64,000 nucleotides of DNA from Zancudomyces culisetae HAW-14-8 (lineage: Eukaryota > Fungi > Kickxellomycota), in contig JBNJNM010000012.1 of assembly GCA_052426225.1 (NCBI GenBank), positions 310,001-374,000 on the forward strand, read 5' to 3'. Positions 22,896 through 51,400 of this stretch are shown here, one piece after another. Made by a program: the position numbers and the translations under genes. How positions within the stretch are numbered: the stretch's first letter is position 1; each line of letters starts with the position of its first letter. The notes under the pieces are model-generated. The model was not told the DNA's origin, ran no database searches, and saw only the letters and a program-made list of their open reading frames with translations.

Positions 22896-25510
22896 ATGCC
22901 TTCAGGTAAGTTAGTAATCTTTTAATTTAATTTAATTTTTCTCTACAGTAATTCGAAATCCTAGCTAGATCAAAAACTTAAAAATTCATCATATGTATAA
23001 CATCAACCCAAAAATGTGTACCCATAAAATAAAATATAAACATGTGAATTGAATTGAATTCAATACATTTTAGGTTTCGGTAGAAGCAAATCGAAAGAGG
23101 GTGGCGAAGTGAGAAACAGACAAAAAAACAAAATAGAAAATCGGTTAAAATCAAAAGCAGGTACATTTCAAATTACATTTGTGAAACGCACTGTCCTTTC
23201 TCTTTTGTTGTTGGTATTTGTATCTTTTTTTGAGACAAAAACATCTGTAATATATACTATTAGAAAAAAAGCTGAGCAGTGTCATAGAAAGCCTTTCAAA
23301 CTCAAAACAGGCAATAACAGTAAGAGCAAGAAATATCCAAAAAACCAAATGGATATCATTTGGCATAATTTTGGGAATATTAATTAGTGCATACTTTGCC
23401 TATTTTAATCAGGATGTGGATTCGAAATTTAAAGATTTGCAGAACAAGTTTAAGTATCTTTCTGGAGAAAAATGGGAGTTTATGCAAAAATTGCCCTCAG
23501 AATATTTTTCAGAAGAAAACATTACAAAAATTTACAAGCTACTAAAGTCAGATGAAAAAGATACACCCAAGGTAACCGAAGAAACGTTCGAGCCTGCGAA
23601 AAGCATGATGCGCGATAACAAACTGAAGCCTAAACATCCAGTTGTGCTAATCCCTGGTGTTATAACGTCTGGTTTAGAGAATTGGAGCACAACAGGAGGT
23701 TTTCAGGCCTACTTTAGAAAGCGAATATGGGGAACTTTCAGTAAGACAATTCTTATAACCTGAATTTACTATTTTATCCAGACCAAGCCTATTCTCCGAA
23801 AAAAGGAATAGTCTAATACGTTTTACTTGTTAAATAGCAATGGTACAGGCATTATTATCTGATAAAAAATGTTGGTTAAAGCACATGTCTTTGGACCCAA
23901 GAACTGGAATGGACCCCCCAGGTATTAGACTGCGTGTTGCCAAGGGACTCGAAGCAGCGGATTATTTTATGACAGGATACTGGTTATGGTCAAAAATTAT
24001 TGAAAACTTTTCGACCGTTGGCTATGACAATTTTAATATGTTCATGGCCTCGTATGACTGGAGATTGAAAATGGATTCTCTACAAGCACGCGATAAATAT
24101 TTTTCCGAGATGAAGCATCGCATAGAAATGAATAAAAGTGTCCTGGGAGAAAAGACCGTCTTGATATCTCACTCAATGGGTAACTTGCATTAATCTTTAA
24201 GTAAAAAAAGTATATTTATGAAAACCCACCTCATTCCATTGCGAATAGTAGTCTTAAAGTTGATTGCATTTTTTAAATAGGTGGTTTGGTAGCAATGTAT
24301 TTCCTGAATTGGGTCAGATCCCCCGCACACGGAAATGGTGGTGAAAATTGGGTCAACGACCATATAGAATCATGGGCAAATTTGGCTGGACCCCTCCTAG
24401 GAACACCAAAGGCATTTTCAAGCTTATTCTCAGGGGAACAAAAAGAATCTGTACAACCAATTGTTAGCTATTTGCTTGAAAACTATATGAGTAGAGCAGA
24501 GCGCGCGAAGCTGTTTCGCAATTGGGGATCATTTTCAGCAATGCTGCCCAAGGGCGGTGTGAAGGTATGGGGTGGAGTAGATAGTGCTCCTGATGATATT
24601 TCTGCCATTAATATCGATATTTCTGCTAAGAAAGAGCAGGAAGCTGGAAAAGGACGGGTATCTACTGTGAATACATCTTCTGTGGGTTCATTTGGAAGAT
24701 TTCTAAATATTTATGGAGAGACCGGCGAGGGTGAGTTGGGTGATACCCGTTTTCTAGATGTCGAACAATCACTGAACATGTTGCTGGAAATGCTTGATCC
24801 AGTCACAAGAAAAAACGTTTTAGAAAGCAATAACTTTGGAGCATTTAATCAAACTTCGGAATTTGAAAAACACAAGTATGACTCAAGCACATGGATAAAC
24901 CCACTTACTCACCAACTACCCAACGCAAAAAACATGACCATTTATAATTTTTATGGAGTTGGTATACCTGCCGAAAGAGGGTATCATTACAAACTCAACC
25001 CAAAATTTGATGAACAACAAAATTATCTCGAAGATGGGTCAGATGTTGATGTTATGAAATATGTGGTCAACAATAATAAAAACACACAAGGAGTGATAGA
25101 ATCGGGCATTACATATTCGGATGGGTAAGTCCTGTTTTTGTACTTGTTTTAGAGAAATAATACCACTAGAATTTTAAGCTCGGATTTTGATGCAGCAAAA
25201 TTTATATATTTCAAATAGAGATGGAACGGTATCACTTCTATCACTAGGTTTGATGGGAGCGAAAGGTTGGAAAAGTAAAAAATATAACCCCCACGGAGTT
25301 AAAGTGGTCGTTCGAGAGCTTCCTTCCAAACCTGTCTCTTTCATAAAAGGACTTGGGATAGGGGGAGGTGCAGAGCTTGTCGACCACCTTGGCATGCTTG
25401 GGAATTATGAGCTATTGACAGATTTGATAAATATCGTAACAGGAAACAAAACGGTTTCAGAAAAGATTTATTCCAATATTACCACAATGGTCGAACGGAT
25501 CGACCTATAG
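22896..25510 (+). CDS. LRO1: Phospholipid:diacylglycerol acyltransferase (LCAT/PDAT family)
   Basis: 10-nt first exon ATGCCTTCAG (22896-22905), then 23074-23160, 23264 to about 23740, and further exons to 25510. Single N-terminal TM helix; motifs HPVVLIPGVITSGLENWS, YDWRL, lipase motif HSMG|G split by an intron, CFYG-like NFYGVGIPAERGY, and DGTVSLLSLG. Confidence 0.93.
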
Positions 25511-25895: not shown

Positions 25896-28800
25896 CTAGA
25901 ATATCCCATTGTACTTTTTCTGCCCGTTGATCCCGCAAAATCCTTCTCCCACTCCACATTGTCCCCACTCGCTACAACATTGATAATCCGGACACCTTGC
26001 CCTTTCTGGCGATTCTTCACCACATACCTGGGTTGAATCAACTATTCTTGGCATGGTTCCATGTGAAATACATATGTGTATTCCGGTATGTATATTTTCA
26101 CATCCATGAAACTTTCTTGTATTTTTGTTAAATTCATAGATATCCTGTACGGAAATATTGTTTGCGCGAGCAATTGAAATACATGAATCCCCTAGTTGTG
26201 TACGATATACACCACAGGGAATAAACCGATCCGGTGATGCCCAATCATAGCTTTCTTCGGATGGATGATGATCCCGACCATGGTCAAACTCATGATATTT
26301 CTCATGGTTATAGCTATGATCAAAATACTCGTCATCATTAACATGATCAAATAAGTGTTTATCTATTTCTATATCCTGGTATCGGTGCTTATGGCGTTCA
26401 TTTTTGTAGTTTTTGTAGTTTTTGTAGCTTTTGTGGTTTTTGTGGATGCTGTTGTCTTTATGAATGCTGTTGTCATTGTGGTTGTTGTTGTCTTTATGGT
26501 TGCTATAGTTTTTGTGGATGCTATAGTTTTTGTGATCTTTATGATTCCTGTTAGATTTTGCTCGACTTCTCTCGCTATCACCATCATAGTACTCTCGACC
26601 ATGTCCTAACGTGTAGTTATAAAAGATGTTTATAATATATCTTCGAAAATAAGATTATATAAGCTACGGTATTGTTTATATAGTGAATTATATATTATAT
26701 GCTCTAAAACTCAAAAATAGTACTAAATAGCACCAAATAGTGTCAAAATAGAGTTGCACGCTACTCACCTCTATCATGATTGCTAGATTTATCACTGATT
26801 TTTTGATTGTGGTTATGGACATTTTTATTATGGTTTTTAAACTTATGGCCACCTCTACCATCATCATTGTGTTTTTCATGCTTAAATTTGTCGGAGTATT
26901 CAGAGTTGATATTATATCTTATATGATCTAGAGAAAGCTTGTGACGAGAAGAGCCATGATTTTGGTAATTTTTGTTGGATGGTAATTTTGTTTTAGTAGG
27001 ACGTTGTCTGTTATCCCTGTTATCCCTGTTATCCCTGTTATCCCTGTTACTCCTATGATCTCTGCCATCACCATTGTTTCTACGGTTTTCATGTTTGTTG
27101 AATTTACATCTGTTGTGACACCACATTTTAGAAGCTGGAAGTTCAGACTGTTTGGGATTTGTACGAGAGCACTTCGGCGACTTCGTTTTAGAGATTGTGG
27201 GTTTACACTTTCGTGTTTTAGTTTTAGTTTTATTTTTAGTTTTACTTGAATTTTGCGTAGAATATGATGGGTAACTATTAGTGCGTGTTGTTTTATGCCC
27301 GTCCTTAGTTTTGGTTTTATCTTCACCCTTAGTTTTGGTTTTATCTTCATCCTCGCTCTTGGTTTTATTCTCGTCCTTAGTCTTGGTTTTATCTTCCTCC
27401 TCCTCCTTATTTTTAGTTTTATCCTCGTCCTTAGTCTTGGTTTTATCTTCAACCTTATCTTTGGTTTTATCTTCGTCTTCGTCCTTAGTCTTGGTTTTAT
27501 CTTCATCCTTATTTTTGGTTTTATCTTCATCCTTAGTCTTGGTTTTATCTTTGTCCTTATTTTTGGTTTTATCCTCGTTCTCGTCCTTAGTTTTGGTTTT
27601 ATCTTGATCCTTAGTTTTGGTATTATCTTCATCTTCGTCCTTAGTTTTGGTATTATCCTCGTTCTCGTCCTTAGTCTTGGTTTTATCTTCGTCCTTAGTT
27701 TTGGTATTATCCTCGTCTTCGTCCTTAGTCTTGGTATTATCCTCGTCCTTAGTTTTGGTTTTATCCTCGTCCTTAGTCTTGGTTTTATCTTCATCCTTAT
27801 CTTTGGTTTTATCTTCGTCTTCGTCCTTAGTCTTGGTTTTATCTTCATCCTTATTTTTGGTTTTATCTTCATTCTTAGTCTTGGTTTTATCTTCATCCTT
27901 ATCTTTGGTTTTATCTTCGTCTTCGTCCTTAGTCTTGGTTTTATCTTCATCCTTATTTTTGATTTTATCTTCATCCTTAGTCTTGGTTTTATCTTTGTCC
28001 TTATTTTTGGTTTTATCCTCGTTCTCGTCCTTAGTCTTGGTATTATCTTGATCCTTAGTTTTGGTATTATCTTCATCTTCGTCCTTAGTTTTGGTATTAT
28101 CCTCGTTCTCGTCCTTAGTCTTGGTTTTATCCTCGTCCTTAGTTTTGGTTTTATCCTCGTCCTTAGTCTTGGTTTTATCTTCATCCTTATCTTTGGTTTT
28201 ATCTTCGTCTTCGTTCTTAGTCTTGGTTTTATCTTCATCCTTATTTTTGGTTTTATCTTCATCCTTAGTCTTGGTTTTATCTTCATCCTTATCTTTGGTT
28301 TTATCTTCGTCTTCGTCCTTAGTCTTGGTTTTATCTTCATCCTTATTTTTGGTTTTATCTTCATCCTTAGTCTTGGTTTTATCTTTGTCCTTATTTTTGG
28401 TTTTATCCTCGTTCTCGTCCTTAGTCTTGGTATTATCCTCGTCCTTAGTTTTGGTATTATCCTCGTCTTCGTCCTTAGTCTTGGTATTATCCTCGTCCTT
28501 AGTTTTGGTTTTATCCTCGTCCTTAGTTTTGGTTTTATCCTCGTTCTCGTCCTTAGTTTTGGTTTTATCTTCGTCTTCGTTCTTAGTCTTGGTTTTATCT
28601 TGATCCTCGTTTTTGGTTTTATCTTTGGTTTTATCTTCATCTTCGTCCATATTTTTGGTTTTATCCTCGTCCTCGTCCTCGTCCTTAGTCTTGGTTTTAT
28701 CTTCGTCCTTATTTTTGGTTTTATCCTCGTTCTCGTCCTTAGTTTTGGTTTTATCTTGATCCTCGTTTTTGATTTTATCTTCATCTTTATCCTTGGTGGT

Positions 28801-29202
28801 ATCTGTGGTTTTATCCCCGTCCTTAGCATTGGTTTTATCTTCATTCTTAGTCTTGGTTTTATTTTCATTCTTAGTCTTGGTTTTATCTGTGGTTTTATCC
28901 CCGTCCTTAGTTTTGGTTTTATCCGTGGTTTTAGTATCATCTGCATCACCATCACCATCTGGTCCTACATTTGTTCCTGTCTCGATATCTGATGTGGTTG
29001 TTTTTGTATCTTTCCGCTTTTCCGAGATCCCTGTCGAGTCTTTATTCCCAAACAAGTCGATTTTCAAAATGTTTTCGTTTTGATTTCCTATCTCCACTAA
29101 CTTTAGAGTTGGTAGTGTAAAAGCGCTGGCCTTTTGCATCATACCTACACCAAGTATGACAAACAACACCACACTCAACAGTATCTTTACACTTGCTCGC
29201 AT
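25896..29202 (-). CDS. Secreted repeat protein: signal peptide, KTKTKDED array, His/Asn-rich region, LysM, hevein/CBM18 (about 1047 aa)
   Basis: Exon 1 29202-26769 (donor GTGAGT), exon 2 26605-25896 (acceptor TTAG, phase 1 preserved). Exon 2 ends ...CGVYRTQLGDSCISIARANNISVQDIYEFNKNTRKFHGCENIHTGIHICISHGTMPRIVDSTQVCGEESPERARCPDYQCCSEWGQCGVGEGFCGINGQKKYNGIF*. Hydrophobic N-terminus ending ASA-F. Confidence 0.88.
27300..28935 (-). repeat. Coding minisatellite of 24/30-nt units (KTKTKDED, KTKTKDEDED) with higher-order periodicity
   Basis: Recurring unit such as ttagtcttggttttatcttcatcc. The variant atctttgtcc recurs at 27547, 27991 and 28381 (spacings 444 and 390 bp). Confidence 0.95.
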
Positions 29203-30725
29203 TTTTCAACATGTACTCTTTAGTTTTTGCTTTTTTTCAATAAATGCTTTCTTTACCAGCTGCTGTATGTTAGTGTAGAAATAAAATGTAGCAAGTGCAA
29301 AGTTGAACAAGTATTTATATTTGAGTGTGGAGCTTTATACAACATACAACATACAACATTGATGAATGTTTAATACGTATATTTTATTTGAACATTTTAA
29401 TTTTATGATGTGTGATGATCCAAAATATATTGATATTAAAACTTGCTTTATTTAATATTACTCTTTTACAAAGATACTGAGCGAGTTTCATTCAATTTAA
29501 TATACCAGGATGTTTCTTGTTTATGATTCAACTTGTTATAAGCTATTTAAATTAAATAAGCTTTTCATCTTCCAGCAAATGTGTTGCGCTGCTAAAACTA
29601 CAATTGATTGAGTGTCAACATAGCGTGTTTTATTAACTTTGAATAAGATGTCCTCTTCTCAACGTTTTTTCGAACTAATGTTGATTATAAGTTTTTATTT
29701 ATAAACTTGATATATAACGGGCAATAGTTTATATGAGCAATTTCCACCTTCATCAGCCCTATTGCTTAATTGTGTTCATCTAATTACTCTTCTTTCCTCT
29801 CCTTATTAAACGGATGTTAGCGATTTTGAATGGCTTTAATTTGTTTTTTCACAATGTGAATATCTAGTTTTCTTTTGCCGGATATCAGAAAAGTAAACAT
29901 TTTCTATGGTTGTTAGTAATGGGCTTGTAAAAAGCTGAATCGCTATGTTTTTTTAGTAGCTATATTTATTAAACCTAATTGGATAAATTGTATGTACTAT
30001 AGTGCCTTTGTAAATATATTATGACACCTATTTTTCAGAAATAGCCGTGTACACAACTGCAAGAACAGATTTGGTCGTATATATTCGTTTTTCTTTGAAA
30101 AGTAACGAATAGTGGTTCCAACTTCCTAGCCACTTTTTTTTCTTGGTGAATCTATTTAGTAACTATTCATAAAATACTACAAAACAAATAATCTTACACA
30201 CTACCTATTTAACTAATTACTCCTCGTCCCTCTTAGCTTTATATTTACCGGGTGTCGATTCAAGGAGATCGCCTCTGCTCTGAGTCGATTAAATGTAATT
30301 ATCCTAAATGGAAAGACTTTACCCAAAAAGCTAGTTATGTTTAGCTAGATTAGGGATGGTATTTTGGCTTCAGTCTCCCTTGAAGTCAAGGTGACCGGTC
30401 TTTATGATTTTCCTCCAATAATTCTACTCAGCCACTTGATACGGGAGCGTTAAAATTTTTCTGCGTACTCTATGTTTTAAACGATACGTCACACAATGGG
30501 TTTTTGCTCATATAAACTATATCCCCCTCCCGAGATTATAATCTTGTACTTTGAAATAGAGAATATACACTTTTCCCGTTAAGTGGTAAAGTGAAATTTA
30601 TTTGGTCAAATACCCCGTTAATAAAAAATAAATATGCGACTCCGGTTTCTAAAGGAAAAATGATTGCTTTACTCTACATATTATTGAAAACTACTCATTT
30701 CTCATATCTAAGGATACTGATGGGT

Positions 30726-33700
30726 TTAATATATGCTTTCGTTATCCTCCGTAATACTCGGATCTTCAATGACTTTTAAAAACACTTTATATAACGAGGC
30801 TTGAGTGATTGACCAGCTATCAACATGATACATTGATTGATTGGTTTTTATCTCATTGAAAATTTTGGGGATTAGCCCGCTGTGGTTATTAAATGACCAT
30901 GTTGAAGTATTAAACATAGTTTCAATATTCTCAGAATCCTTTGGGAGGAAACTATCAATAAATTTTCTGGCTTGGTCCAAATAACTTGTTTCGCACGATA
31001 TTTTCAACAAAAATCCGCCCCCATAGAGCTCTTTTAGCCTTAACTGAGACCCAATACATCTCATCACACCATCTTGCATAATTGCTACTTTTGTGCATAG
31101 AACCTCCGCCTCTTCCATACTGTGCGTTGTTATAACAATTGTTCTATCTTTTCTGTTTGTTTTTATTAACTCCCATATACTTCTACGCGATTCAGGGTCC
31201 AGCCCGGTCTAATTATAACATTCGATTATTACTGATATTAATCTATTATTCTGTTGCTTACTCGTATAACAAATAACACAAACATTGTTAGAAATATTAT
31301 AAATATAATATCGCTGATAGTATACTTACTGTAGGTTCGTCTAGAAAAATAACACGAGGATTTCCGATAAAAGAAATAACTAGACTCAACATTCGCCTTT
31401 GGCCCCCTGATAGGTGTCTTACAAGTTTCTCTTTGACTTTATACAGCATTGTATTGTTTAGCAATAAATTTACATGATCATTTTCCTCTGAAGGCTCAAT
31501 TCCCTTTAGTCGTGCGTAAAAATATAAATGATCAGTAACTGTCAAATCTTCCCACAGGATATCATGCTGAGGACATATACCAAAACTAAAATATATCTCT
31601 GAGCTAAATGAACCGACGTCGTAACCATCAAGTTTGGCACTCCCAGATGTCATGGAATGTAATCCCGATAACATTGAAATTAGTGTCGTTTTTCCTGCGC
31701 CATTTGGTCCCAAGAGCCCCAATATACAGTCGCTTTCTACAGCCATTGTTACATTTTTTACAGCGTATTTCCCGGATTTATAGCGTTTTTGAACGTTGTG
31801 CAATACAAGAGGAGAAGATTGACAGTAAAGATTCTCCTCTACATTTAGTCTTTCGTTTTTCACATCTTCATCCTCTTTATCGAGATCAATTTCTGTATTC
31901 CTATCGCCACAACCAGGTAGGGTTCTGCGTTTGTTAAAGGGGCGTAGAAAAAAATACCAGGGTCTTTTTATTCCATATCCCTGAGACAGTACGTTACCAA
32001 AGTATACTGTGAGAAGTAGATAGATCACAGAAGCGACAACAAGTGCCATGAAACAATTAAAGACGCCATCGTGTGGTTTCAAATCAGAAAGCTGATATGG
32101 TGATTTTTCTAGTGACATTGAAGAAATGTTGAGCAGGTATAGTGCTCTATACATAGCGAATGGAGGCCACAACAGATACATAAAGGACATGTTATCCAGA
32201 GATTGCATATTAACTGTTGTATTAATAACTACACTACAGATCACCAATAAACACGATATTGTTAGTGCAGTTCTGGTTTTTTTAAACAGCGTGCTCAGGA
32301 AAAATGATAAAGTGATCTGCGCATTATTCCATAGCAAGAGTAAGGTAATGTACACAGAAGGATCTGTTCGAGTAAACAACTCTGTGCGGAAAATGTACCC
32401 CGATAATGTTAGAAAGAGAGTTGACCACAAGAAAAGCACAAAAAAATGAATATAGTGTGCACAATAGTAATACAACGTTCTTATTCCATTCATCCTCATC
32501 ATAATCATTATTTTGCTCTCCTTTTCCTTTACAAGAATCATTACAAATATAGGAATAAGAAATGATACGCCAAAGGGATAAAGGATAGCACCCACAAATC
32601 CACCTATTGGTATTTGCAAACTGTTGTCAAAGAATTGTGGCATTGCTCTCAATCCATGCGATAGCATTGCGCTTGGATCTTTTAGCGATGTTCTGAGAAA
32701 CGCATTGGTTAGTTGTGTATGTTGGGTTATTAATCTATCCATAAGCGAAGGAAACAACCCCAGAATTGAGATATCTCTATCTTCTCCAAACTGCATAGTA
32801 TATTGCCACTCGCTATTTTCTGGATCTATCTTATCCATAAGGAGCGCTCCCCATGGCATTTTATTTATTATAGGCGCCAATTTTTCGTAATATTTGAAAA
32901 GAACCTCGACCTGACTAAGTTTTTTTGCTCTTGATGCTTGTGCCTCCTTTACGTAATCTTCAATCTGCCTTTTCGTTGTGATAACGCTATCCTTGGAGCT
33001 TAGTATGTATGCTTTGATCGTATCGTCAATGCTTGGGCCGCTGTTTTCAGCTCCTATATTGTCAAACCAAGGGACCGGCTTCAGCCCATTTATTACTATT
33101 GCGTTTTCGGCTTCCTTGTCTTGACTGACATCCATAAAAAAGTTGGTTTTTATTTGGTTCAATAGCCTAAGATCGAGTGAACTTTTTACATCCTCCAGCA
33201 TCACGTAAGAATAAATTGATTCAATATCAGGAATGATAGTTCCAGAAAGATTTGAGCCTTCTGGCGCATTTAACACTAGTAACGGGCGTTCAACTCTACT
33301 ACCTGCATTGTTTTTTGTTGAATCTCGAACTAGTACAAACTGACTTTTTTGATTTGATAATAACTTTAGAAAGTTTTTTTGTAGGAATTTCACATTGAAC
33401 CAGCCACCAGCCGGATCAGGCTTCATAGTTCTATAATTAATGAAATTGGTTATAACAATATAGTCAATACTTGCTTTTACAGACATGAGTGCGGTGTAAA
33501 ACTTTTTCATCAAGATATATCAGTGATTTTTTTTTAGTGTGTTAACTTTCTTTTGGAGATATTTGTAGTAGTAAAAATAACTTACGAATCTCTTCTTAAT
33601 GCATCTGAAATGTTTGGTGATATCTCGTATGGCGATGAAAAGGAACTACTGTGCTCAAACTGCCATACACAACTAGGTGATCGATCGGTTATCGATAGTG

Positions 33701-34151
33701 CGCCGCTTTTGGAAATATCTGTATCGATTATACTCATAGGTAGCAAATAGTGGTTCAGATGATAAACTGTTTTATCTTTTGGAAGGTTTGGAGCTTCAAT
33801 GCCCTGTACCATCGGTAACTTTTCCTTGCTGTAGTTATTGATAGGTATATTGAATATATCTGATGCGTTCTTGTTAGAACACATTAAATAGTTTTGTTCT
33901 GAATTCAAAGTTTGAGCTACACTTCGCACTATCATGGTTATTATTCCACCTGCTGCAAACATCAGAAACGGGCATAGCGCTACACAAAACACATTTATAA
34001 GGTACTGCCGTTTTTGATAACTAATTTTACTTCTGGCCAGTGCTCTAATCTGAAAAGTTCTTTTTTGCCCATAATTTCTGTTAATGTTGTGCGATGAATC
34101 AAATATTATTTTACTCGATTCCAGTGTAGTACTATGTTCATCTATCCTCAT
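30726..34151 (-). CDS. Half-size ABCA-family transporter (TMD-NBD), paralog 1
   Basis: Exons 34151-33586, 33430-31330, 31208-30726. One N-terminal TM helix, large exocytoplasmic domain, LVKEKESK..MRMNG, Walker A GPNGAGKT, CPQHDILW, signature LSGGQRR, FLDEPT|TGLDP and TTHSMEEAEVLC. Confidence 0.92.
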
Positions 34152-36157
34152 TGTGGCTCAAAGCTTTTTTTTGTGTGTTACCAGGCTCTATTTTCTAAAG
34201 CAAGTCTATACCCTTCACTTTTTCTTTTTCTTTTTTTTTTTTTTTTTTTTTTCTTTTTTTATTCAGTTGTTTTTGTATGTGAAGCCGATTACTTTGTTGA
34301 TTGCTCTTATAGATGGATCCCTTTATACTTAAGAAGACAAATGCGAGTTTTTAAAAGAAAAGACTAGTGAATTATTATAAAGATGTTGACAGTATTATTG
34401 TTAGTATCCCTTAAAGTTCTCTACTGCGGGTTTGTACAAACATAACTCAATGTTTTAAAGATACTCTACGATTTAGAAATATTAAATACATAGTGTGGAT
34501 AATATCCAAACGTGTATAGATATGCTAGACTCAAATAATCGCAAGACTTGGTTCTAACCTTGAGCTTCACATAAAGTTTATGAACTTTGTAAAATACTTT
34601 CTTTTTCTGTTTACGCTTTAAAAGCAAGTATATCATTGGAAAACAATTCATTGTCGAGATAACTTAGCCGAGTTTAAAGTTAACTCGTCCCAGTATACAG
34701 AAAAAGAATAGCTATCCCAATTAAAGTCTGTTTTTTCTCAGCTCATTATTTGTACCTCAAATTGTAGTGTTGTTTTGTGTTGGGCTTTTTAATGTTGGGG
34801 TTTCTATACTTTTCAAGTATATTTTAAACTATCATACTTGGTACAGCGCTAGTGCTATTGTTGTGGGTTGTTATTTTTTGCGGCTGCTGTTGTCTTTAAA
34901 TCATGTGCAGAGTAGTTAAAATTATTGGGCAAGCAAAACATCACTTTCTCGTTTGTGGTTTACTGAAGCATACTTTCTGGTGCAACAAAAATCAAAGCTA
35001 AGACTAGGATTAAAGCTGAATCGTTGTCTGATAAGTCGTTCCAAGTGATACGATACTACTTTTCCTGTAAATCTGAAACCTAGTTTTAATTTTAAATACT
35101 TCACCACATCACAGCCTACAAATAGAAAGCGGTGTATCAAAGCAAGTCTGCAATAGCTGCGGTTCCGTTGTAGGCTCCTAATACTTTGAGAAGGAACTGG
35201 GGCTTTACACAAATAAAGGTATAACATATAAAGCCAGACTTTATTCAGTAAACCAACAAAACGTTTCGGTTTTTGCTCTTTTTTATTTCATCTTTTTAGT
35301 ACCAGGTAAACCAAAGCTATCAAAAAAAAGTATAACAAACATCCGCGAAATTTGTTCTCCACCAAAAAAAGTATCAAGAGCAAGAGACAGCGAATGGAAC
35401 TCACCTAATAAATGTGATTCAGAATAAAGACACAATGATGCGAATTGTAAGAAACATAGATTCTGTGGGGTTAAAACGCGTATACACTGAATAACAAAAA
35501 TTCCATCAAAATGTGTTTCAGTGAGAAATCACAATGTTGAAAAAGTGAAACACAAGCAGGTATACGTAAACTAAAAATGATACCAATTTATAGATATTCA
35601 TAACCCTATCAGTGAGTGTAGTTATTTTTGCTCTACTTTAATAAGAGGAGACTATGTGATAGTATTTCTTTCAGATGGAAAAGCGTAAACTCAAGGATAT
35701 TATCTAGTAATACACCACTTATATGTATGTCACCTTGGCTTGCTCGTTAACAAAAACATCAATAACTTAAATCTAAGCTAGTTGTGTTGATGAAATTAGT
35801 TGTAAATTATTTGGTGCATTTTTAGCTTGTATGCGATGATTAGTATAGTATGGACTTGTGAAATAGCGGTAACTATAACAAAGATATCAGTGGTAAAAGT
35901 AAAAGGAGTAATTAGTGAGTGTCTTTTAGAGATTCAGGGGGTAAGCACAAAGTGCATATTAGACAGGTTGCAAAAGCCCCCGATTAATGATGATCTCCTT
36001 TATAGTTCAAAAAAATGACAGGTATTCTTGAATAATCAACGCTGGGGAGAAATTAGTTTGTAATACACTGATAATTTAAAAGTTAGATGGAAATAATGTT
36101 GGTTTTGTGTTGGTGTTTATTGAATATACCAGCCCACTAGTCACATTTTTTGAGTAC

Positions 36158-38344
36158 GATCTGAGAAGAGAATACAAGTTTACCAGTTGTATAGTACTGT
36201 TGTAATGTACATATTCTAGAATATCCCATTGTACTTTTTCTGCCCGTTGATCCCGCAAAATCCTTCTCCCACTCCACATTGTCCCCACTCGCTACAACAT
36301 TGATAATCCGGACACCTTGCCCTTTCTGGCGATTCTTCACCACATACCTGGGTTGAATCAACTATTCTTGGCATGGTTCCATGTGAAATACATATGTGTA
36401 TTCCGGTATGTATATTTTCACATCCATGGAACTTTCTTGTATTTTTGTTAAATTCATAGATATCCTGTACGGAAATATTGTTTGCGCGAGCAATTGAAAT
36501 ACATGAATCCCCTAGTTGTGTACGATATACACCACAGGGAATAAACCGATCCGGTGATGCCCAATCATAGCTTTCTTCGGATGGATGATGATCCCGACCA
36601 TGGCCAAACTCATGATATTTCTCATGGTTATAACTATGATCAAAATACTCGTCATCATTAACATGATCAAATAAGTGTTTATCTATTTCTATATCCTGGT
36701 ATCGGTGCTTATGGCGTTCATTTTTGTAGTTTTTGTAGTTTTTGTAGCTTTTGTGATTTTTGTTGTATTTATGAATGCTGTTGTCTTTATGGTTGCTATA
36801 GTTTTTGTGGATGCTATAGTTTTTGTGATCTTTATGATTCCTGTTAGATTTTGCTCGACTTCTCTCGCTATCACCATCATAGTACTCTCGACCATGTCCT
36901 AATGTGTAGTTATAAAAGATGTTTATAATATATCTTCGAAAATAAGGTTATATAAGCTACAGTATTGTTTATATAGTGAATTATATATTATATGCTCTAA
37001 AACCCAAAAATAGTACTAAATAGCACCAAATAGTGTCAAAATAGAGTTGCACGCTACTCACCTCTATCATGATTGCTAGATTTATCACTGATTTTTTGAT
37101 TGTGGTTATGGACATTTTTATTATGGTTTTTAAACTTATGGCCACCTCTACCATCATCATTGTGTTTTTCATGCTTAAATTTGTCGGAGTATTCAGAGTT
37201 GATATTATATCTTATATGATCTAGAGAAAGCTTGTGACGAGAAGAGCCATGATTTTGGTAATTTTTGTTGGATGGTAATTTTGTTTTAGTAGGACGTTGT
37301 CTGTTATCCCTGTTATCCCTGTTATCCCTGTTATCCCTGTTACTCCTATGATCTCTGCCATCACCATTGTTTCTACGGTTTTCATGTTTGTTGAATTTAC
37401 ATCTGTTGTGACACCACATTTTAGAAGCTGGAAGTTCAGACTGTTTGGGATTTGTACGAGAGCACTTCGGCGACTTCGTTTTAGAGATTGTGGGTTTATA
37501 CTTTTGTGTTTTAGTTTTGAGGGTAGCAGATTTACATTCTCGAGTTTTGGATTTAGAAACTTTAGGATTGCATTTTTGGGTTATATGCTTAGTTGAGTAT
37601 TTTTGAGATGAATAAAAGGTAGAGTAACGCGAATTATTTTTTGTAAAGCTGGAAACGGAGCTAAAAACAGGATGCGTTGTTGTAGATGAAGAGATCAAAT
37701 AATTTTGAGATTCTGAAATTCTCGCAAAATCCAAGGATGTATTTGATGATGTAGTTGATTCTGAGGATGTTGATGATGTGGTTGAGGATGTGATTAATTT
37801 ATCTGGCTTATTTGGTGATTTAGCTGATGTGGTTGATGTGGTTGATGTGGTTGATGTGGTTGATGTGGTTCATGTAGTTGTTTTTGTATCTTTTTGTTTT
37901 TCCGAGTTCCCTGTCGAGTCTTTATTCCCAAACAAGTCGGTTTTCAAAATGTTTTCGTTTTGATTTCCTATCTCCACTAACTTTAGAGTTGGTAGTGTAA
38001 AAGCGCTGGCCTTTTGCATCATACCTACACCAAGTATGACAAACAACACCATGCTCAACAGTATCTTTACACTTGCTCGCATTTTTCAACATGTACTCTT
38101 TAGTTTTTGCTTTTTTTCAATAAATGCTTTCTTTACCAGCTGCTGTATGTTAGTGTAGAAATAAAATGTAGCAAGTGCAAAGTTGAACAAGTATTTATAT
38201 TTGAGTGTGGAGCTTTATACAACATACAACATACAACATATAACATTGATGAATGTTTAATATGTATATTTTATTTGAACATTTTAATTTTATGATGTGT
38301 GATGATCCAAAATATATTGATATTAAAACTTGCTTTATTTAATA
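36158..38344. repeat. Direct segmental repeat, copy 2
   Basis: Near-identical to both ends of 25838-29457. The central part, about 37500-37875, is largely unrelated to the copy 1 array. Confidence 0.95.
36216..38082 (-). pseudogene. Paralog of the LysM/CBM18 secreted protein with a Ser/Thr stalk and an in-frame TGA at codon 71 (pseudogene, recoded gene or sequence error)
   Basis: Exon 1 38082-37062, exon 2 36898-36216, 568 codons in total. ORFs 37870-38082 and 37054-37734 are in the same frame, separated only by TGA at 37872-37870, where copy 1 has TCA (Ser). Confidence 0.7.
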
Positions 38345-48422: not shown

Positions 48423-51400
48423 TCATTCATAGGCATCAGCATCCTCTTCACCTATGACCCTCAAGAACACTTCGTCTAGCGAGGTCTGGCTGATCCCCCA
48501 ATCTTCAATAAAATAGGCGGACTTGTTTACGCTAAGCTCTCTAAATATGGTGGACAAGAACCCTGTTTGTGTGCTAAACTCCCAAGTTATAATATTAGAG
48601 AAACTATCAATGATTCTCCCATTATTTTTTAATAACCTGCCAATGTACTCTTTACAATTTTCGATATGCTGAGACTTGGTATATACCGAAAGTAAATATC
48701 CATTTCCATAAAGCTGGCGGAGCTCGACTGGTGATCCGAGACACCGCATGGTTCCTTTAGCCATTATTCCGATTTTGTCGCAGAGTACCTCGGCTTCCTC
48801 CATGCTATGTGTGCTGATGACAATGGTCTTATCCTTCTTACCATCTTCTATAACTTTCCAAACAGTTCTGCGTACTTCAGGATCCAACCCTGTTGTAGGC
48901 TCATCAAGAAATACAACCGTAGGATTTCCCACAAAGGAAATGGCTATACTTAGCCTGCGCTTTTGTCCACCCGAAAGATGCTTTGCTTCCACTTCAGCAA
49001 ACTCTTTCAGGTCCACACTGGCAATTACTTTGCTTACTACATTTTTTTCCATTTGCGGAGATATGCCTTTCAGTCTTGCAAAAAAATAAAGATGCTCCGA
49101 AACAGTAAGGTTATCCCAAAGAATGTCGTGTTGGGGACATATGCCAATATGACGGTAGACCTGTGCAGTTTCAGTATTTATATCAAATCCTGCGATTTTT
49201 GCTGTTCCGGAACTCAGTTTGTACATTCCAGACACAATGGAAATAACTGTCGTTTTTCCGGCACCATTAGGTCCTAGGAGCCCGAAAATTTGTCCTTTGT
49301 CAACAGCAAGTGTGACATCTTTTACAGCAAGCTTTCCTGTTGGGTAAATTTTACGAAGTCCCTTAAATACCAATGGCGTATCTTTTGTGTATTCACCATT
49401 CATTACTCTTTCTCTCTCATTTTTAACATAGACATCCTCATATTCTAGCTCTGTTTTATCAAGCGCACCCAACCTCGCTACTTCAAGGTCTTTTCTCCTG
49501 AAAAAGTCTGAAATAAAAAAATGCCATGGTTTTTTGATCCCGTATTCCGATGGCAAAACCTGATTGAGGTACAGTGCCAAAAGGAGATACACAAACCAAC
49601 CAATAAGGAGCGCCATGAGACAAGAAAAAACCTCATCGCCTGGCACAATGTCTGAAAGTGTGTATGCAGGTCTAATGGTTGAGATAGATGCACCATTCAG
49701 TAAATCTAACACCCTAAAGGCTGCAAATGGAGGCCAGATAAGGTATGCCAACGGCACACCAGTGGGTATGATCTGTGAAATCGCATTGTTGATTCCTACG
49801 CTCCAAATAACCACAAGGTAGGTTATTACAAATGCCGAGCGGCTCCCTTTGAATATCGAACTAAAGAAAAAGGCCAACGCGATTTGGACATTGCTCCACA
49901 AGAAAAGCAGTAATACTAGTACTGAACTGCCTGTCTTTGTGAATAGTTCCAATTTAAATGCATATCCTCCCACCAAAAAGAAAAAGAAACATAAAACTGA
50001 AAGGATGAGGAAATGGACATAATTTGCAATATAATATGTGTAAAGTTTAAGTCCATTCATTTGCATCAACACCAGAATTCGTGCTTCCTTTTCTTTGACA
50101 AGCATAAGTGTGAATACAGCTATTAGCGAGGATATTCCTAGAGGGTTCAATAGAGCTCCAATTAATGCACTTATAGGCACTCTATAGCCTTGAAAAAATG
50201 CCTGTGGCATTGCTAATAGCCCATGTGATATTGTAGCACCCTGATCATTGCTAGCTGCTCTAAATAGCCCATTTCCTAGCTGTGTTTGTTGTACTATCAT
50301 TCTATCTATCGTTTCAGGAAATAAGCCAACCGAACTTATTTGAGAGTTGGTGCCTGTCTGTAACGTGTACTTCCAGCGCATGTTTTCGTTGTCTGCTTCA
50401 TCAAAAATGATTGCACCCCAAGGTACTAGTTCCAGTATACGTCCGACAATTGAAAAGTATCTTAGCATTTGGTTTCTGTTGTTCTGGTTGTTTGGGTTTA
50501 AACCCAAAACATAAAACTCACTGGGATCAATATCGGAAAGCTGGGATTTTACATTGGTGATGATATCCTTTAGTCTTGCGTCTATTTCTAGCGTAGTGGT
50601 ATTGTCAAAACTCATCGTGTCAAACCACGGTGCTGCAACTAACTTATTTGGTGCATACGTGCTGGTCCCTGCAACATTTAGCTCACCAACACCCATCCAA
50701 AAATTGGTGTCCAAACCTCCCAATATTCCTGTCGAGTTTCTAGAGTTTAAACTGTTCTGGACTTTGTCGCTGGATATAATCTGTTGAATCCCTGAGATGC
50801 TGGAGTTATTGGTGTCAAGAATCGATGAAACCGAAAGAGGAATCGGTTCCACTTTCCCCAGACGTCCTACCTGACCATTTGGGGAATCACGAACCAACGA
50901 CCAGTGAAGTTTCTGGTTTAAGAGATATTTCACTACATTTTTTGCAAGAAAACCTTGCCCGAACCATCCACCAAGAGGCTCAGGTTTTCCTGTCCTAATT
51001 GAGGGTGTATTGAATATTGCATTTTATTATGATTAAGAAAGAAATGCTAACTTTTAATGTATTTATTTCAACTGTAATATAGAGCTTTACTTACGTGTCT
51101 AATCTCACGGAAAGCGGCACTCGAGGGTCGTTTTTATACGGTGATGAAAAAGAATAAGTGTGTTCAAACTCCCATGCACAACTGGGAGTTCTATCCGCAA
51201 GCGTAAACATTCTAAACGTTCTTGTTTGATCTACTACATTCACTGGTAGGATGTAACTATTTGTAACATTAAATTTTCTGTTCCTGTACTTTGGATTGAA
51301 AGTATCACCAGAAACCGCAGGAATATCATTCCGTGACTTTGGTGGACTGGGCATATTGTAAGCGTCTGTATAGGCGATATTGGCGCACATCAAGTAACTT

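Follow-up and report, generated by a model that had tools for sequence, protein, structure and literature searches.

Gene A, on the minus strand of the window analysed here (64,000 nucleotides of Zancudomyces culisetae HAW-14-8, contig JBNJNM010000012.1, positions 310,001 to 374,000), is best explained as a real nuclear gene of this fungus, apparently intact and composed of two exons, whose product of about 1047 residues is predicted to be secreted and is without an enzyme domain. The product consists, in order, of a signal peptide, about 60 unique residues, a 550-residue stalk, a basic linker of about 300 residues rich in His, Asn, Tyr and Lys, and a C-terminal LysM-CBM18 head (Table 1). We regard it as quite probable that this is a real secreted chitin-binding stalk protein. 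Its unusual part is the long charge-balanced repeat stalk; the LysM-CBM18 head is itself not new and adds nothing new to chitin-binding biology.

Table 1. Features of gene A and its paralogue B, in positions of the window
Feature	Position	Strand	Details and basis
Exon 1	26769..29202	-	811 codons + 1 base; ATG at 29202; ORF list; GTGAGT donor immediately after
Predicted intron	26606..26768	-	163 nt, GTGAGT...TTAG, phase 1; sequence reading; GT/AG and length the same in four copies
Exon 2	25896..26605	-	2 bases + 235 codons + TAG stop (25898-25896); translation and Pfam
Upstream region common to A and B (presumed promoter and 5' UTR)	29203..29457	-	direct repeats D3/D5
Signal peptide, residues 1-27	29122..29202	-	hydropathy and -3/-1 Ala rule (heuristic); predicted cleavage after A-S-A, before F28
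Unique N-terminal segment, residues 28-90	28933..29121	-	nearly identical in paralogue B to about residue 70
K/T/D/E polyampholyte stalk, residues 91-640	27283..28932	-	about 60 units K-T-K-x-K-D-E-D(-E-D); coding minisatellite
Basic Asn/Lys/Ser/Arg/His-rich exon-1 tail, residues 641-811	26770..27282	-	4 Cys, (R-D-N)x4 run; common to paralogue B
His/Asn/Asp/Lys/Tyr/Ser-rich tract, exon-2 residues 1-125	26229..26603	-	15% His, 10% Tyr
Fungal-type LysM (CBM50)	26064..26216	-	4 conserved Cys; Pfam, AlphaFold model, Foldseek
CBM18/hevein-like domain	25917..26024	-	6 Cys, last Cys codon ends 25935; Pfam, phmmer, fold
Paralogue B	36216..38082	-	promoter, signal peptide, tail, intron and head as in A; short Ser/Thr-rich stalk

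Most of this layout had been proposed in an earlier note on the same DNA. Exon 2, missed by the ORF track, was found where the note had put it, with the His/Asn/Tyr tract, a LysM at 26216-26064 and a 6-Cys hevein motif at 26024-25935; both domains score above the Pfam cut-offs (PF01476 and PF00187), in agreement with the predicted fold. The signal peptide and the charge-alternating K/T/D/E stalk of about 550 residues were recovered by the hydropathy heuristic, by composition and as a tandem array, and the claimed lack of a GH18 domain, transmembrane anchor or GPI signal is borne out by Pfam and hydropathy. The intron proposed at 26768-26606 holds as a sequence prediction, being canonical, in frame and conserved in four copies. 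The origin from an arthropod-gut fungus, which the note raised as a condition, also proved right: the genes neighbouring gene A find their best matches in Harpellales, and a third family member, on contig C15, has 97-100% identity with a protein of record LSSK01001670.1, which belongs to Zancudomyces culisetae (PMC5954228).

The ORF list gave exon 1 as 26761..29202 (minus strand, 813 codons), the frame being closed by a TAG two codons past the GTGAGT at 26768. The exon-2 frame is open from 26654 only and runs without a stop in translation down to 25896; the AG at 26607-26606 is the sole acceptor there in phase with the 26768 donor, and excision of these 163 nt unites the two frames. The signal-peptide exon and the domain exon would thus connect solely via this canonical GT-AG intron. 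Exon 2 has no ATG ahead of the LysM, and therefore it cannot stand alone. Both the splice sites and the intron length are kept in A and B, each on contigs C12 and C6, and the exon indels among these four copies are all multiples of 3. Divergence of intron against exon was considered as a further test of the intron, but the argument was dropped: between A and B alone the intron seemed the more variable part (4 differences in 163 nt), while across the four copies intron and exon rates are similar. A neighbouring gene of the LCAT family contains a 94-nt GTAAGT...TAG intron (25125-25218), the removal of which restores a conserved G-D-G-T-V motif. The sequence shared by A and B reaches upstream of the start codon as direct repeats of 97-98% identity (28992-29291 = 37872-38171 and 29337-29457 = 38224-38344).

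Database searches of gene A were made exon by exon, and the signal peptide and GPI signal were judged by simple hydropathy rules. The predicted signal peptide has an n-region followed by a 16-residue hydrophobic core, with a Kyte-Doolittle 19-residue maximum of 2.39 at residues 4-22. A single KR site (residues 62-63) is present in the N-terminal segment. The Pfam profile search detected no family in exon 1, and no match to GH18 (PF00704) in either exon. By hydropathy, no hydrophobic stretch that could span a membrane follows residue 30, and a GPI signal is absent, the C-terminus just past the hevein domain being hydrophilic (mean hydropathy of the last 20 residues -0.09).

The stalk is composed of 32% K, 24% D, 20% T, 14% E and 7% N. 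Its fraction of charged residues is 0.71, the net charge per residue -0.06 and the net charge about -34, while kappa is about 0.14, equal to that of shuffled sequences, indicating well-mixed charges. At the DNA level Tandem Repeats Finder gave a 24/54/102-nt array at 27290-28935, and autocorrelation added higher-order periods of 444 and 390 nt. Codon position 1 is A or G in 98% and position 2 is A in 78% and C in 20%, while position 3 is even (AAA/AAG 94/82, GAT/GAC 90/44, ACC/ACT 63/41), and yet 97% of the residues are K, D, T, E or N. Since positions 1 and 2 are almost fixed and position 3 is evenly mixed, the stalk is coding and clearly under protein-level selection. The open frame and the multiple-of-3 indels were also considered as proof of coding for the array, but they carry little weight, since several frames of the repeat are open and slippage by units that are multiples of 6 nt preserves the frame automatically. 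Gene A and its copy on contig C6 both keep full-length frames across 12 indels, and the stalk sequence is unique in the genome to these two. An ESM Atlas feature search with exon 1 returned no usable match.

A single-alpha-helix stalk was judged unlikely from the composition (20% Thr and 24% Asp, with only 14% Glu) in view of known helix propensities. In the Das-Pappu polyampholyte scheme, well-mixed charges give a swollen hydrated coil and not a self-sticking coacervate; read in this way, the mixed charges of the stalk would favour a spacer or brush over a glue. The stalk is a natural, nearly neutral, well-mixed polyampholyte of 550 residues, arising from a fast-changing minisatellite and held under selection, and may interest researchers on disordered proteins and biomaterials.

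Between stalk and head lies the basic linker. The exon-1 tail has a net charge per residue of +0.16 and is identical in A and B from about 27200 downstream, and a 27-nt in-frame indel between A and B falls inside the exon-2 His/Asn/Tyr tract. The two segments together contain 32 His and many Tyr and Lys. Neither exon 2 nor the exon-1 tail found a match at E <= 0.001 in a word-index search of proteins.

The LysM scores 25.2 bits against PF01476 (cut-off 20.9; 28.0 bits in the genome scan), the match covering profile positions 1-28 of 43 only. Its AlphaFold model (pLDDT 87-97) has the beta-alpha-alpha-beta fold, with strands at 13-15 and 57-59 and helices at 22-28 and 33-40, and Foldseek superposed it on the LysM of Pteris chitinase-A (4pxv/5ylg) with TM 0.89-0.91 and rmsd 1.4 Å. 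The CBM18 scores 31.3 bits against Chitin_bind_1 (PF00187; cut-off 27.8; 34.3 bits in the genome scan), matches wheat germ agglutinin (4e-13) and Ac-AMP2 by phmmer, and superposes on pokeweed lectin, wheat germ agglutinin and Ac-AMP2 with rmsd 1.2-2.1 Å. An alignment of 34 homologous heads has 14 invariant columns, and all 10 Cys are among them. Of the Cys, C11, C22, C49 and C59 represent the Cys pairs of the fungal-specific LysM, and C75, C85, C90, C91, C97 and C104 follow the CBM18 pattern C-x(n)-C-x4-CC-x5-C-x6-C. The CBM18 is not a full 8-Cys hevein, since it lacks the last Cys pair, a trait shared with Ac-AMP2 and the majority of chitinase-type heads. Its CCS-x-WGQCG motif agrees with the chitinase-type head consensus, and on its sugar face Ser, Trp and Phe are present and the middle aromatic is Gln, the consensus of the chitinase-type subfamily. 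From these features we infer that the gene A head binds chitin. The binding could be altered or weakened, because the W-G-W motif present in most related LysMs is replaced and the head stands on a very long branch of the tree (3.48 changes per column). With a single head per chain, anchoring would be of low valency only.

The earlier note did not recognise this architecture from characterised proteins. Its reading as a secreted, non-catalytic LysM and CBM18 protein on a long disordered stalk probably stands, but the architecture is not a novel one: the combination of signal peptide, LysM and CBM18 with no catalytic domain is published as type D of the fungal LysM proteins in the scheme of de Jonge and Thomma (2009), which bioRxiv 10.1101/789925 quotes, and the head is the module of subgroup C chitinases. 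Type D calls for a signal peptide and for one or more LysM and CBM18 domains in the absence of a catalytic domain; gene A, its signal peptide judged by heuristic, shows this combination and so belongs to it. Fusarium verticillioides FvLcp1, a functionally studied member of this type, binds chitin through its ChtBD1 domains (bioRxiv 10.1101/789925). Like gene A, it combines a signal peptide, Cys-containing fungal-specific LysM and ChtBD1/CBM18 without an enzyme; it differs in having three LysM and two CBM18 and no long charged repeat, whereas gene A has one LysM and one 6-Cys CBM18, and these lie at the extreme C-terminus behind about 850 low-complexity residues. The head also corresponds to the LysM-CBM18 binding module found in GH18 chitinases of subgroup C (killer-toxin-like) and in zymocin alpha, with which it aligns as a whole (query residues 5-107), sharing the 4+6 arrangement of Cys, the P-P-x-P linker and the CC-x-x-WGQCG motif. 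In subgroup C, however, the module precedes the enzyme; gene A has it C-terminally, with the W-G-W of the LysM replaced and with no match to the GH18 catalytic domain (motif DxxDxDxE), and is thus not a member of this subgroup. Named relatives of the head include chitinases of Metarhizium, Cunninghamella and the dictyostelid Heterostelium, along with unnamed chytrid proteins, and the GH18 catalytic motif was present in 72 of the 150 head matches listed. Several short, apparently enzyme-free database matches with a C-terminal head turned out to be fragments of Metarhizium subgroup C chitinases of 950-1370 residues and were not counted as further cases of this architecture.

Enzyme-free secreted chitin binders such as the LysM effectors Ecp6 and Slp1 and the CBM18 effector Avr4 shield wall chitin or scavenge its fragments (PMC4392113), and Verticillium VnaChtBP is a CBM18 chitin-shielding effector (bioRxiv 10.1101/462499); non-catalytic LysM/CBM18 proteins that bind or shield wall chitin are also treated in PMC7176902 and bioRxiv 10.1101/789925. 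By analogy, the gene A protein may work like these effectors. The effectors are nevertheless small, consist of binding modules only and have zero or one Cys in the LysM, while gene A has a Cys-rich LysM of the fungal-specific kind and consists by mass mainly of disordered stalk; the presence of CBM18 and this type of LysM also set gene A apart from type A LysM effectors (Ecp6-like). With the yeast wall adhesins and mucin-like wall proteins of the Flo/Als type it shares a signal peptide, a low-complexity repeat stalk of variable length and a C-terminal wall anchor, and the Flo/Als Ser/Thr stalks resemble that of paralogue B. Unlike Flo/Als, gene A lacks the C-terminal hydrophobic attachment signal of GPI-anchored wall proteins and a folded N-terminal ligand-binding domain, has a charged stalk and a proposed non-covalent chitin anchor, and shows no homology. 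Compared with Ac-AMP2, the 6-Cys truncated heveins and wheat germ agglutinin, the 6-Cys knot and the conserved Ser, Trp and Phe/Tyr of the sugar face are kept, but the second aromatic is Gln and the domain sits within a large protein instead of forming a peptide or lectin by itself.

In the genome scan all nuclear CBM18 matches fell in stalk-type genes, namely A and B (twice each) and the gene on contig C15. The window copy of paralogue B has an in-frame TGA at 37872-37870, which is absent from its copy on contig C6. The C15 gene encodes signal peptide, polyQ/P stalk, LysM and a CBM18 with all 8 Cys in one uninterrupted ORF; its public annotation had spliced out the polyQ/P stalk and is a mis-annotation. 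That one kind of head is joined to a Ser/Thr stalk in B and to a polyQ/P stalk in C15 suggests that stalks are exchangeable as spacers. Exact look-ups of the window ORFs in public protein sets did not recover A or B, and in the databases searched the family is restricted to Zancudomyces culisetae; CBM18 has been described as otherwise rare in Kickxellomycotina (PMC9866270).

To our knowledge, no molecular account has been given of how gut fungi fasten to the chitinous hindgut lining of mosquito and blackfly larvae and withstand the chitinases there. Comparative genomics of gut fungi proposed a fasciclin-domain protein as the only candidate adhesin (PMC5954228). Because the present family holds every nuclear CBM18 match found, it is a concrete candidate for a component of the surface coat or of attachment. 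For gene A we favour a chitin-tethered brush or spacer, a reading in general terms to which we give an even chance. The head would dock non-covalently on chitin and so replace a GPI or glucan link as the anchor, most likely in the fungus's own wall, with the chitinous hindgut cuticle as the alternative; the own wall seems about twice as probable a target, and sequence does not separate the two. The stalk, possibly O-glycosylated on Thr, would behave as a swollen hydrated coil with a radius of gyration of roughly 10 nm (self-avoiding-coil estimate) and a contour length of about 200 nm. Such a hydrated steric brush could act as a spacer or shield between the chitin surface and the chitinases and lectins of the gut, and would display the short conserved N-terminal segment.

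A glue for holdfast or spore, released at attachment, is unlikely by our estimate, although several features fit it. The head would bind chitin of the hindgut cuticle, the fungal wall or both, and the acidic-leaning stalk (about -34) would pair with the basic His/Tyr/Lys tail (about +27) of neighbouring molecules into a hydrogel cementing the thallus, possibly switched through its many His by a pH shift in the gut. The insect hindgut lining is indeed chitinous, the charge asymmetry runs block by block, His, Tyr and Lys abound in the tail and the exon-2 tract, the family is confined to this species in the databases searched, and CBM18 is reportedly rare elsewhere in Kickxellomycotina. The shuffled-like kappa disfavours self-association, however, and each chain has a single chitin-binding head and no second adhesive domain. 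The Ser/Thr and polyQ/P stalks on the same type of head indicate that family members can do without the special charge pattern, and the public protein sets, which include other holdfast-making Harpellales, yielded no head homologue above about 45% identity. Somewhat less likely still is the extended proposal that A, B and the C15 protein are structural proteins of Harpellales attachment (holdfast cement, trichospore glue or appendage), forming a His-rich, pH-switchable hydrogel that bridges wall and hindgut cuticle. If it were true, this would be the first molecular component of the glue and a new kind of polyampholyte bioadhesive.

We consider it improbable that the gene or its model is not functional as drawn, with the array spliced out, the 163-nt intron unused, or the gene a decaying, unexpressed, lineage-specific duplicate. 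The premature TGA in the window copy of B, the very long head branch and the missing identical or close protein in public sets point in this direction, and the C15 annotation illustrates that models lacking the stalk are possible; against them stand the strong protein-level constraint on the array, the full-length frames of A and its C6 copy through 12 indels, all 10 head Cys and the other invariant positions intact, the canonical and conserved splice sites, and the intact C6 copy of B. Most improbable among the readings considered is a decoy against docking of a killer toxin, in which the bulky stalked proteins, through their enzyme-free heads, would cover wall chitin and keep the toxin from binding to the producer's own cells. 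Zymocin-type toxins use chitin as their wall receptor (PMC4392113; bioRxiv 10.1101/2024.10.25.620242), and the sole GH18-linked LysM-CBM18 in the genome belongs to a killer-plasmid-like element, contig C24, in the front end of a 1149-residue toxin precursor (B_lectin, LysM, CBM18, GH18 and NucA/NucB-like) whose head is 37% identical to that of gene A. In the tree, however, this head groups with the chitinase heads of Cunninghamella and Heterostelium and away from A and C15, which form an unsure long-branch pair, and therefore gives no sign of recent capture; derivation of the nuclear head from the killer element was considered for the same tree and found no support. Known zymocin immunity, moreover, acts inside the cell. 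On C24 the toxin precursor adjoins a fused Rpb2/Rpb1 polymerase, and the element comprises at least five tandem 26-kb units.

The gene under study (gene A) was predicted to consist of two exons joined by a 163-nt intron, and its coordinates in an earlier note, made from the sequence alone, were correct to within a codon. The exon-1 frame meets a stop two codons past the GTGAGT at 26768. Between 26654 and 25896 a second frame is open, and in it a LysM and then a hevein-type domain follow a 125-residue tract in which His, Asn, Asp, Lys, Tyr and Ser are abundant. The AG at 26607-26606 is the sole acceptor within this open stretch in phase with the GTGAGT donor, and with the predicted intron excised the coding sequence runs on through both frames for 1047 codons. 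Since exon 2 carries neither an ATG upstream of the LysM nor a signal peptide of its own, an upstream exon is needed. The predicted intron is canonical, and resembles the motif-verified intron of the adjacent LCAT/PDAT-family gene (94 nt, GTAAGT...TAG), a useful local reference for splice signals because its excision restores the conserved G-D-G-T-V. The locus is present in four copies, all of which preserve the donor GT, the acceptor AG and the intron length of 163 nt, and every exon indel among them is a multiple of 3. In a third family gene, on contig C15, the same domain order lies within one uninterrupted ORF.

Features of the gene A locus and related loci (coordinates without a contig prefix refer to the window)
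Feature	Location	Strand	Description
Gene A ORF	29202-26761	minus	813 codons
Gene A exon 1 (predicted)	29202-26769	minus	signal peptide, stalk, basic tail
Gene A intron (predicted)	26768-26606	minus	163 nt
Gene A exon 2 (predicted)	26605-25896	minus	LysM and CBM18 (hevein) head
Stalk array	27290-28935		tandem repeat
Basic tail, gene A	26770-27282	minus	one and a half K-C-x(12-13)-C motifs
Basic tail, paralogue B	37054-37600	minus	two K-C-x(12-13)-C motifs
Paralogue B	36216-38082	minus
In-frame TGA in paralogue B	37872-37870	minus
Intron of LCAT/PDAT-family gene	25125-25218	plus	94 nt
ABCA-type transporter gene	29458-36157
Second ABCA-like gene	48426-50933
Counterpart of tested window parts	C6, about 2489918-2545184	reverse
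C15 paralogue	C15, about 1412408-1413814	minus	signal peptide, acidic segment, ~130-residue polyQ/P stalk, LysM, full 8-Cys CBM18
LysM-GH18 gene	C15:632186-634060	plus	signal peptide, four Cys-type LysMs, GH18 (DGFDIDWE)
Repeat unit region examined	C24:6000-15999		26,032-bp unit

The gene A product begins with a textbook signal peptide (cleavage predicted by hydropathy rules after A-S-A, residue 27), separated by about 60 unique residues from a stalk of 550 residues, 97% of which are K, D, T, E or N (32, 24, 20, 14 and 7%, respectively). Some 60 units with the pattern K-T-K-x-K-D-E-D(-E-D) make up the stalk, and its DNA is a tandem array with periods of 24, 54 and 102 nt and super-periods of 444 and 390 nt. 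C-terminal of the stalk is a basic tail of 171 residues in which Asn, Lys, Ser, Arg and His are abundant; it includes four Cys and an (R-D-N)x4 run. The Pfam search, performed for each exon separately, matched exon 1 to no family. The basic tail, shared with the neighbouring paralogue B, also contains a C-x3-C pair and gave no Pfam match; its Cys motifs may form a small disulfide-bonded element.

As several frames of the repeat array are open, the openness of the ORF by itself is little proof of coding. The decisive observation is the codon-position pattern in the frame of gene A: position 1 is A or G in 98% of codons, position 2 is A in 78% and C in 20%, while position 3 is A, C, G and T in 26, 22, 22 and 29%, respectively. 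Synonymous codons are freely mixed (AAA/AAG 94/82, GAT/GAC 90/44, ACC/ACT 63/41, GAA/GAG 43/34), yet the residue alphabet is restricted to five letters, indicating that the array is under protein-level selection in this frame.

The domains of exon 2 claimed in the earlier note, a LysM and a 6-Cys hevein, both scored above the Pfam cut-offs (LysM, 25.2 bits against 20.9; Chitin_bind_1, 31.3 bits against 27.8). A phmmer search against solved structures detected the four hevein domains of wheat germ agglutinin (E = 4e-13), the 6-Cys Ac-AMP2 and the LysM of Pteris chitinase A. In an AlphaFold model of the 116-residue head (34 homologues as input; mean pLDDT 82), the LysM half superposed on 4pxv and 5ylg (TM 0.89-0.91, rmsd 1.4 A), and the hevein half on pokeweed lectin, wheat germ agglutinin and Ac-AMP2 (rmsd 1.2-2.1 A). 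Pfam detected no GH18 domain in either exon, and hydropathy rules gave no hydrophobic stretch past the signal peptide and no hydrophobic C-terminus, in agreement with the earlier note, which had also placed a signal peptide and a large charged repeat ahead of the domains and had seen no membrane or GPI anchor. The gene A product is probably secretion-competent and enzyme-free, its sole folded part being the C-terminal, putative chitin-binding head.

An exhaustive HMMER search with the head against 1.84 billion cluster representatives gave 778 matches at E <= 0.001, with identity never above about 45%; in most of them the alignment spans the whole head as one unit. The GH18 motif is present in 72 of the 150 matches listed. 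Named relatives include subgroup C chitinases of Metarhizium and a chitinase of the dictyostelid Heterostelium, accompanied by unnamed chytrid and Cunninghamella proteins. The alignment includes ten invariant or near-invariant Cys, a Pro-rich linker and a CC-x-x-WGQCG motif; both the 6-Cys form and the Gln that takes the place of the second aromatic residue are the norm in this chitinase-type CBM18 subfamily and need not be defects. Several short, apparently enzyme-free matches were rejected as examples of the same architecture, being fragments of long chitinases. In the tree, gene A joins the C15 paralogue with support of 97/93, a grouping that may be false because both are long-branched. The branch of gene A is extremely long (3.48 changes per column), so its head has diverged fast.

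In the genome of 27.09 Mb (25 contigs), CBM18 matches are confined to gene A and paralogue B (two copies each), the C15 paralogue and a toxin precursor on C24. The genome scan found just one further LysM gene, the LysM-GH18 gene, which is nuclear and carries no CBM18. The 16.5 kb around gene A recurs on C6 at 97.5%, and two housekeeping genes near the window ends are about 100% identical there, in reversed order; the copies on C6 and C12 are therefore haplotigs (alleles), or else a stretch of 55 kb or more was duplicated very recently. The neighbouring PGAP1 gene matched best to Harpellales (Furculomyces 59%, Smittium 50-56%), then to Kickxellales. Between gene A and its C6 copy the array has 12 in-frame indels (exon 1, 811 against 806 codons), and of the 23 point differences between the two, 14 are at third codon positions; the array therefore behaves like a coding minisatellite undergoing rapid change. 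The K/T/D/E cassette was found genome-wide only at gene A, in both copies. Genes A and B share the upstream region (97-98%), as well as signal peptide, tail, intron and head (over 99%), whereas the stalk of B is short and Ser/Thr-rich. One in-frame TGA interrupts the window copy of B, at a place where the intact C6 copy reads through a Ser/Thr run; a null allele, a young pseudogene and a base error would each account for it. A protein on record LSSK01001670.1 shares 97-100% identity with the C15 paralogue, the LSSK records being those of Zancudomyces culisetae (PMC5954228). The public annotation of this paralogue, of 240 residues, begins at an internal Met, drops the signal peptide and splices out the stalk, hiding the architecture.

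Most fungal LysM proteins are either subgroup C chitinases or LysM effectors (PMC4392113), and a "type D" combining LysM with a chitin-binding domain and no enzyme domain has been described (bioRxiv 10.1101/789925). Its member FvLcp1, of 733 residues with three LysM and two ChtBD1, is secreted and binds chitin via ChtBD1 (bioRxiv 10.1101/789925). Without GH18, gene A falls outside the subgroup C chitinases, nor is it of the effector type; it fits the definition of type D. The architecture of the head, which the earlier note did not recognise from characterised proteins, is thus already described. Of the note, the observation stands, and the interpretation is supported in part. Unlike known type D members, gene A has only one LysM-CBM18 pair, placed at its very C-terminus behind about 850 low-complexity residues that include the 550-residue strong polyampholyte. 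The papers retrieved by full-text search describe no such stalk, and none comparable was present in the best 150 of the 778 head relatives; the stalk is the new part. CBM18 is reported to be almost absent in Kickxellomycotina except for the mycoparasitic Dimargaritales (PMC9866270), which, together with the C15 mis-annotation, helps explain why the family went unnoticed.

Under the Das-Pappu classification, a well-mixed, near-neutral strong polyampholyte is predicted to form an expanded coil. With a charged fraction of 0.71, near-zero net charge and kappa of about 0.14 (mixing as in shuffled sequences), the stalk should form a coil that is expanded and strongly hydrated, not collapsed or self-sticking. 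The head would tether this chain to chitin, and the stalk would act as a brush or spacer with a depth of tens of nanometres. That B and the C15 paralogue carry this head type on Ser/Thr and polyQ/P stalks, respectively, suggests a generic spacer with the C-terminal head as anchor, a layout mirroring that of GPI-anchored yeast wall proteins. Our preferred reading is a coat that the fungus would bear on its own wall, shielding chitin in the chitinase-rich gut. The adhesive role proposed in the earlier note, here as a holdfast glue for Harpellales attachment, is a speculative and less likely alternative. Harpellales spores do release glue at certain pH (PMC5954228); the product is also charge-asymmetric from block to block (about -34 for the stalk, about +27 for the tail), and 32 His are spread over the tail and the exon-2 tract. 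It is also conceivable that the product serves as a decoy against the toxin of a resident killer element on C24, but the tree, which places the C24 head with Cunninghamella and Heterostelium instead of with A and C15, gives this no support.

Contig C24 (116,273 bp) contains at least five copies of its repeat unit. Each unit encodes a 1149-residue protein with B_lectin, LysM, CBM18, GH18 and a C-terminal NucA/NucB-like domain, and its gene adjoins that of a 919-residue fused Rpb2/Rpb1-type RNA polymerase. C24 resembles a killer plasmid or virus-like element that carries the precursor of a zymocin-like toxin, here in an early-diverging fungus. In each copy of the locus (C6 and C12), genes A and B flank an ABCA transporter gene, with no functional link evident between the ABCA and chitin-binding genes. 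In the window this transporter gene occupies precisely the interval from A to B, with the direct repeats of these genes on either side, and the second ABCA-like gene is located 12 kb further on.
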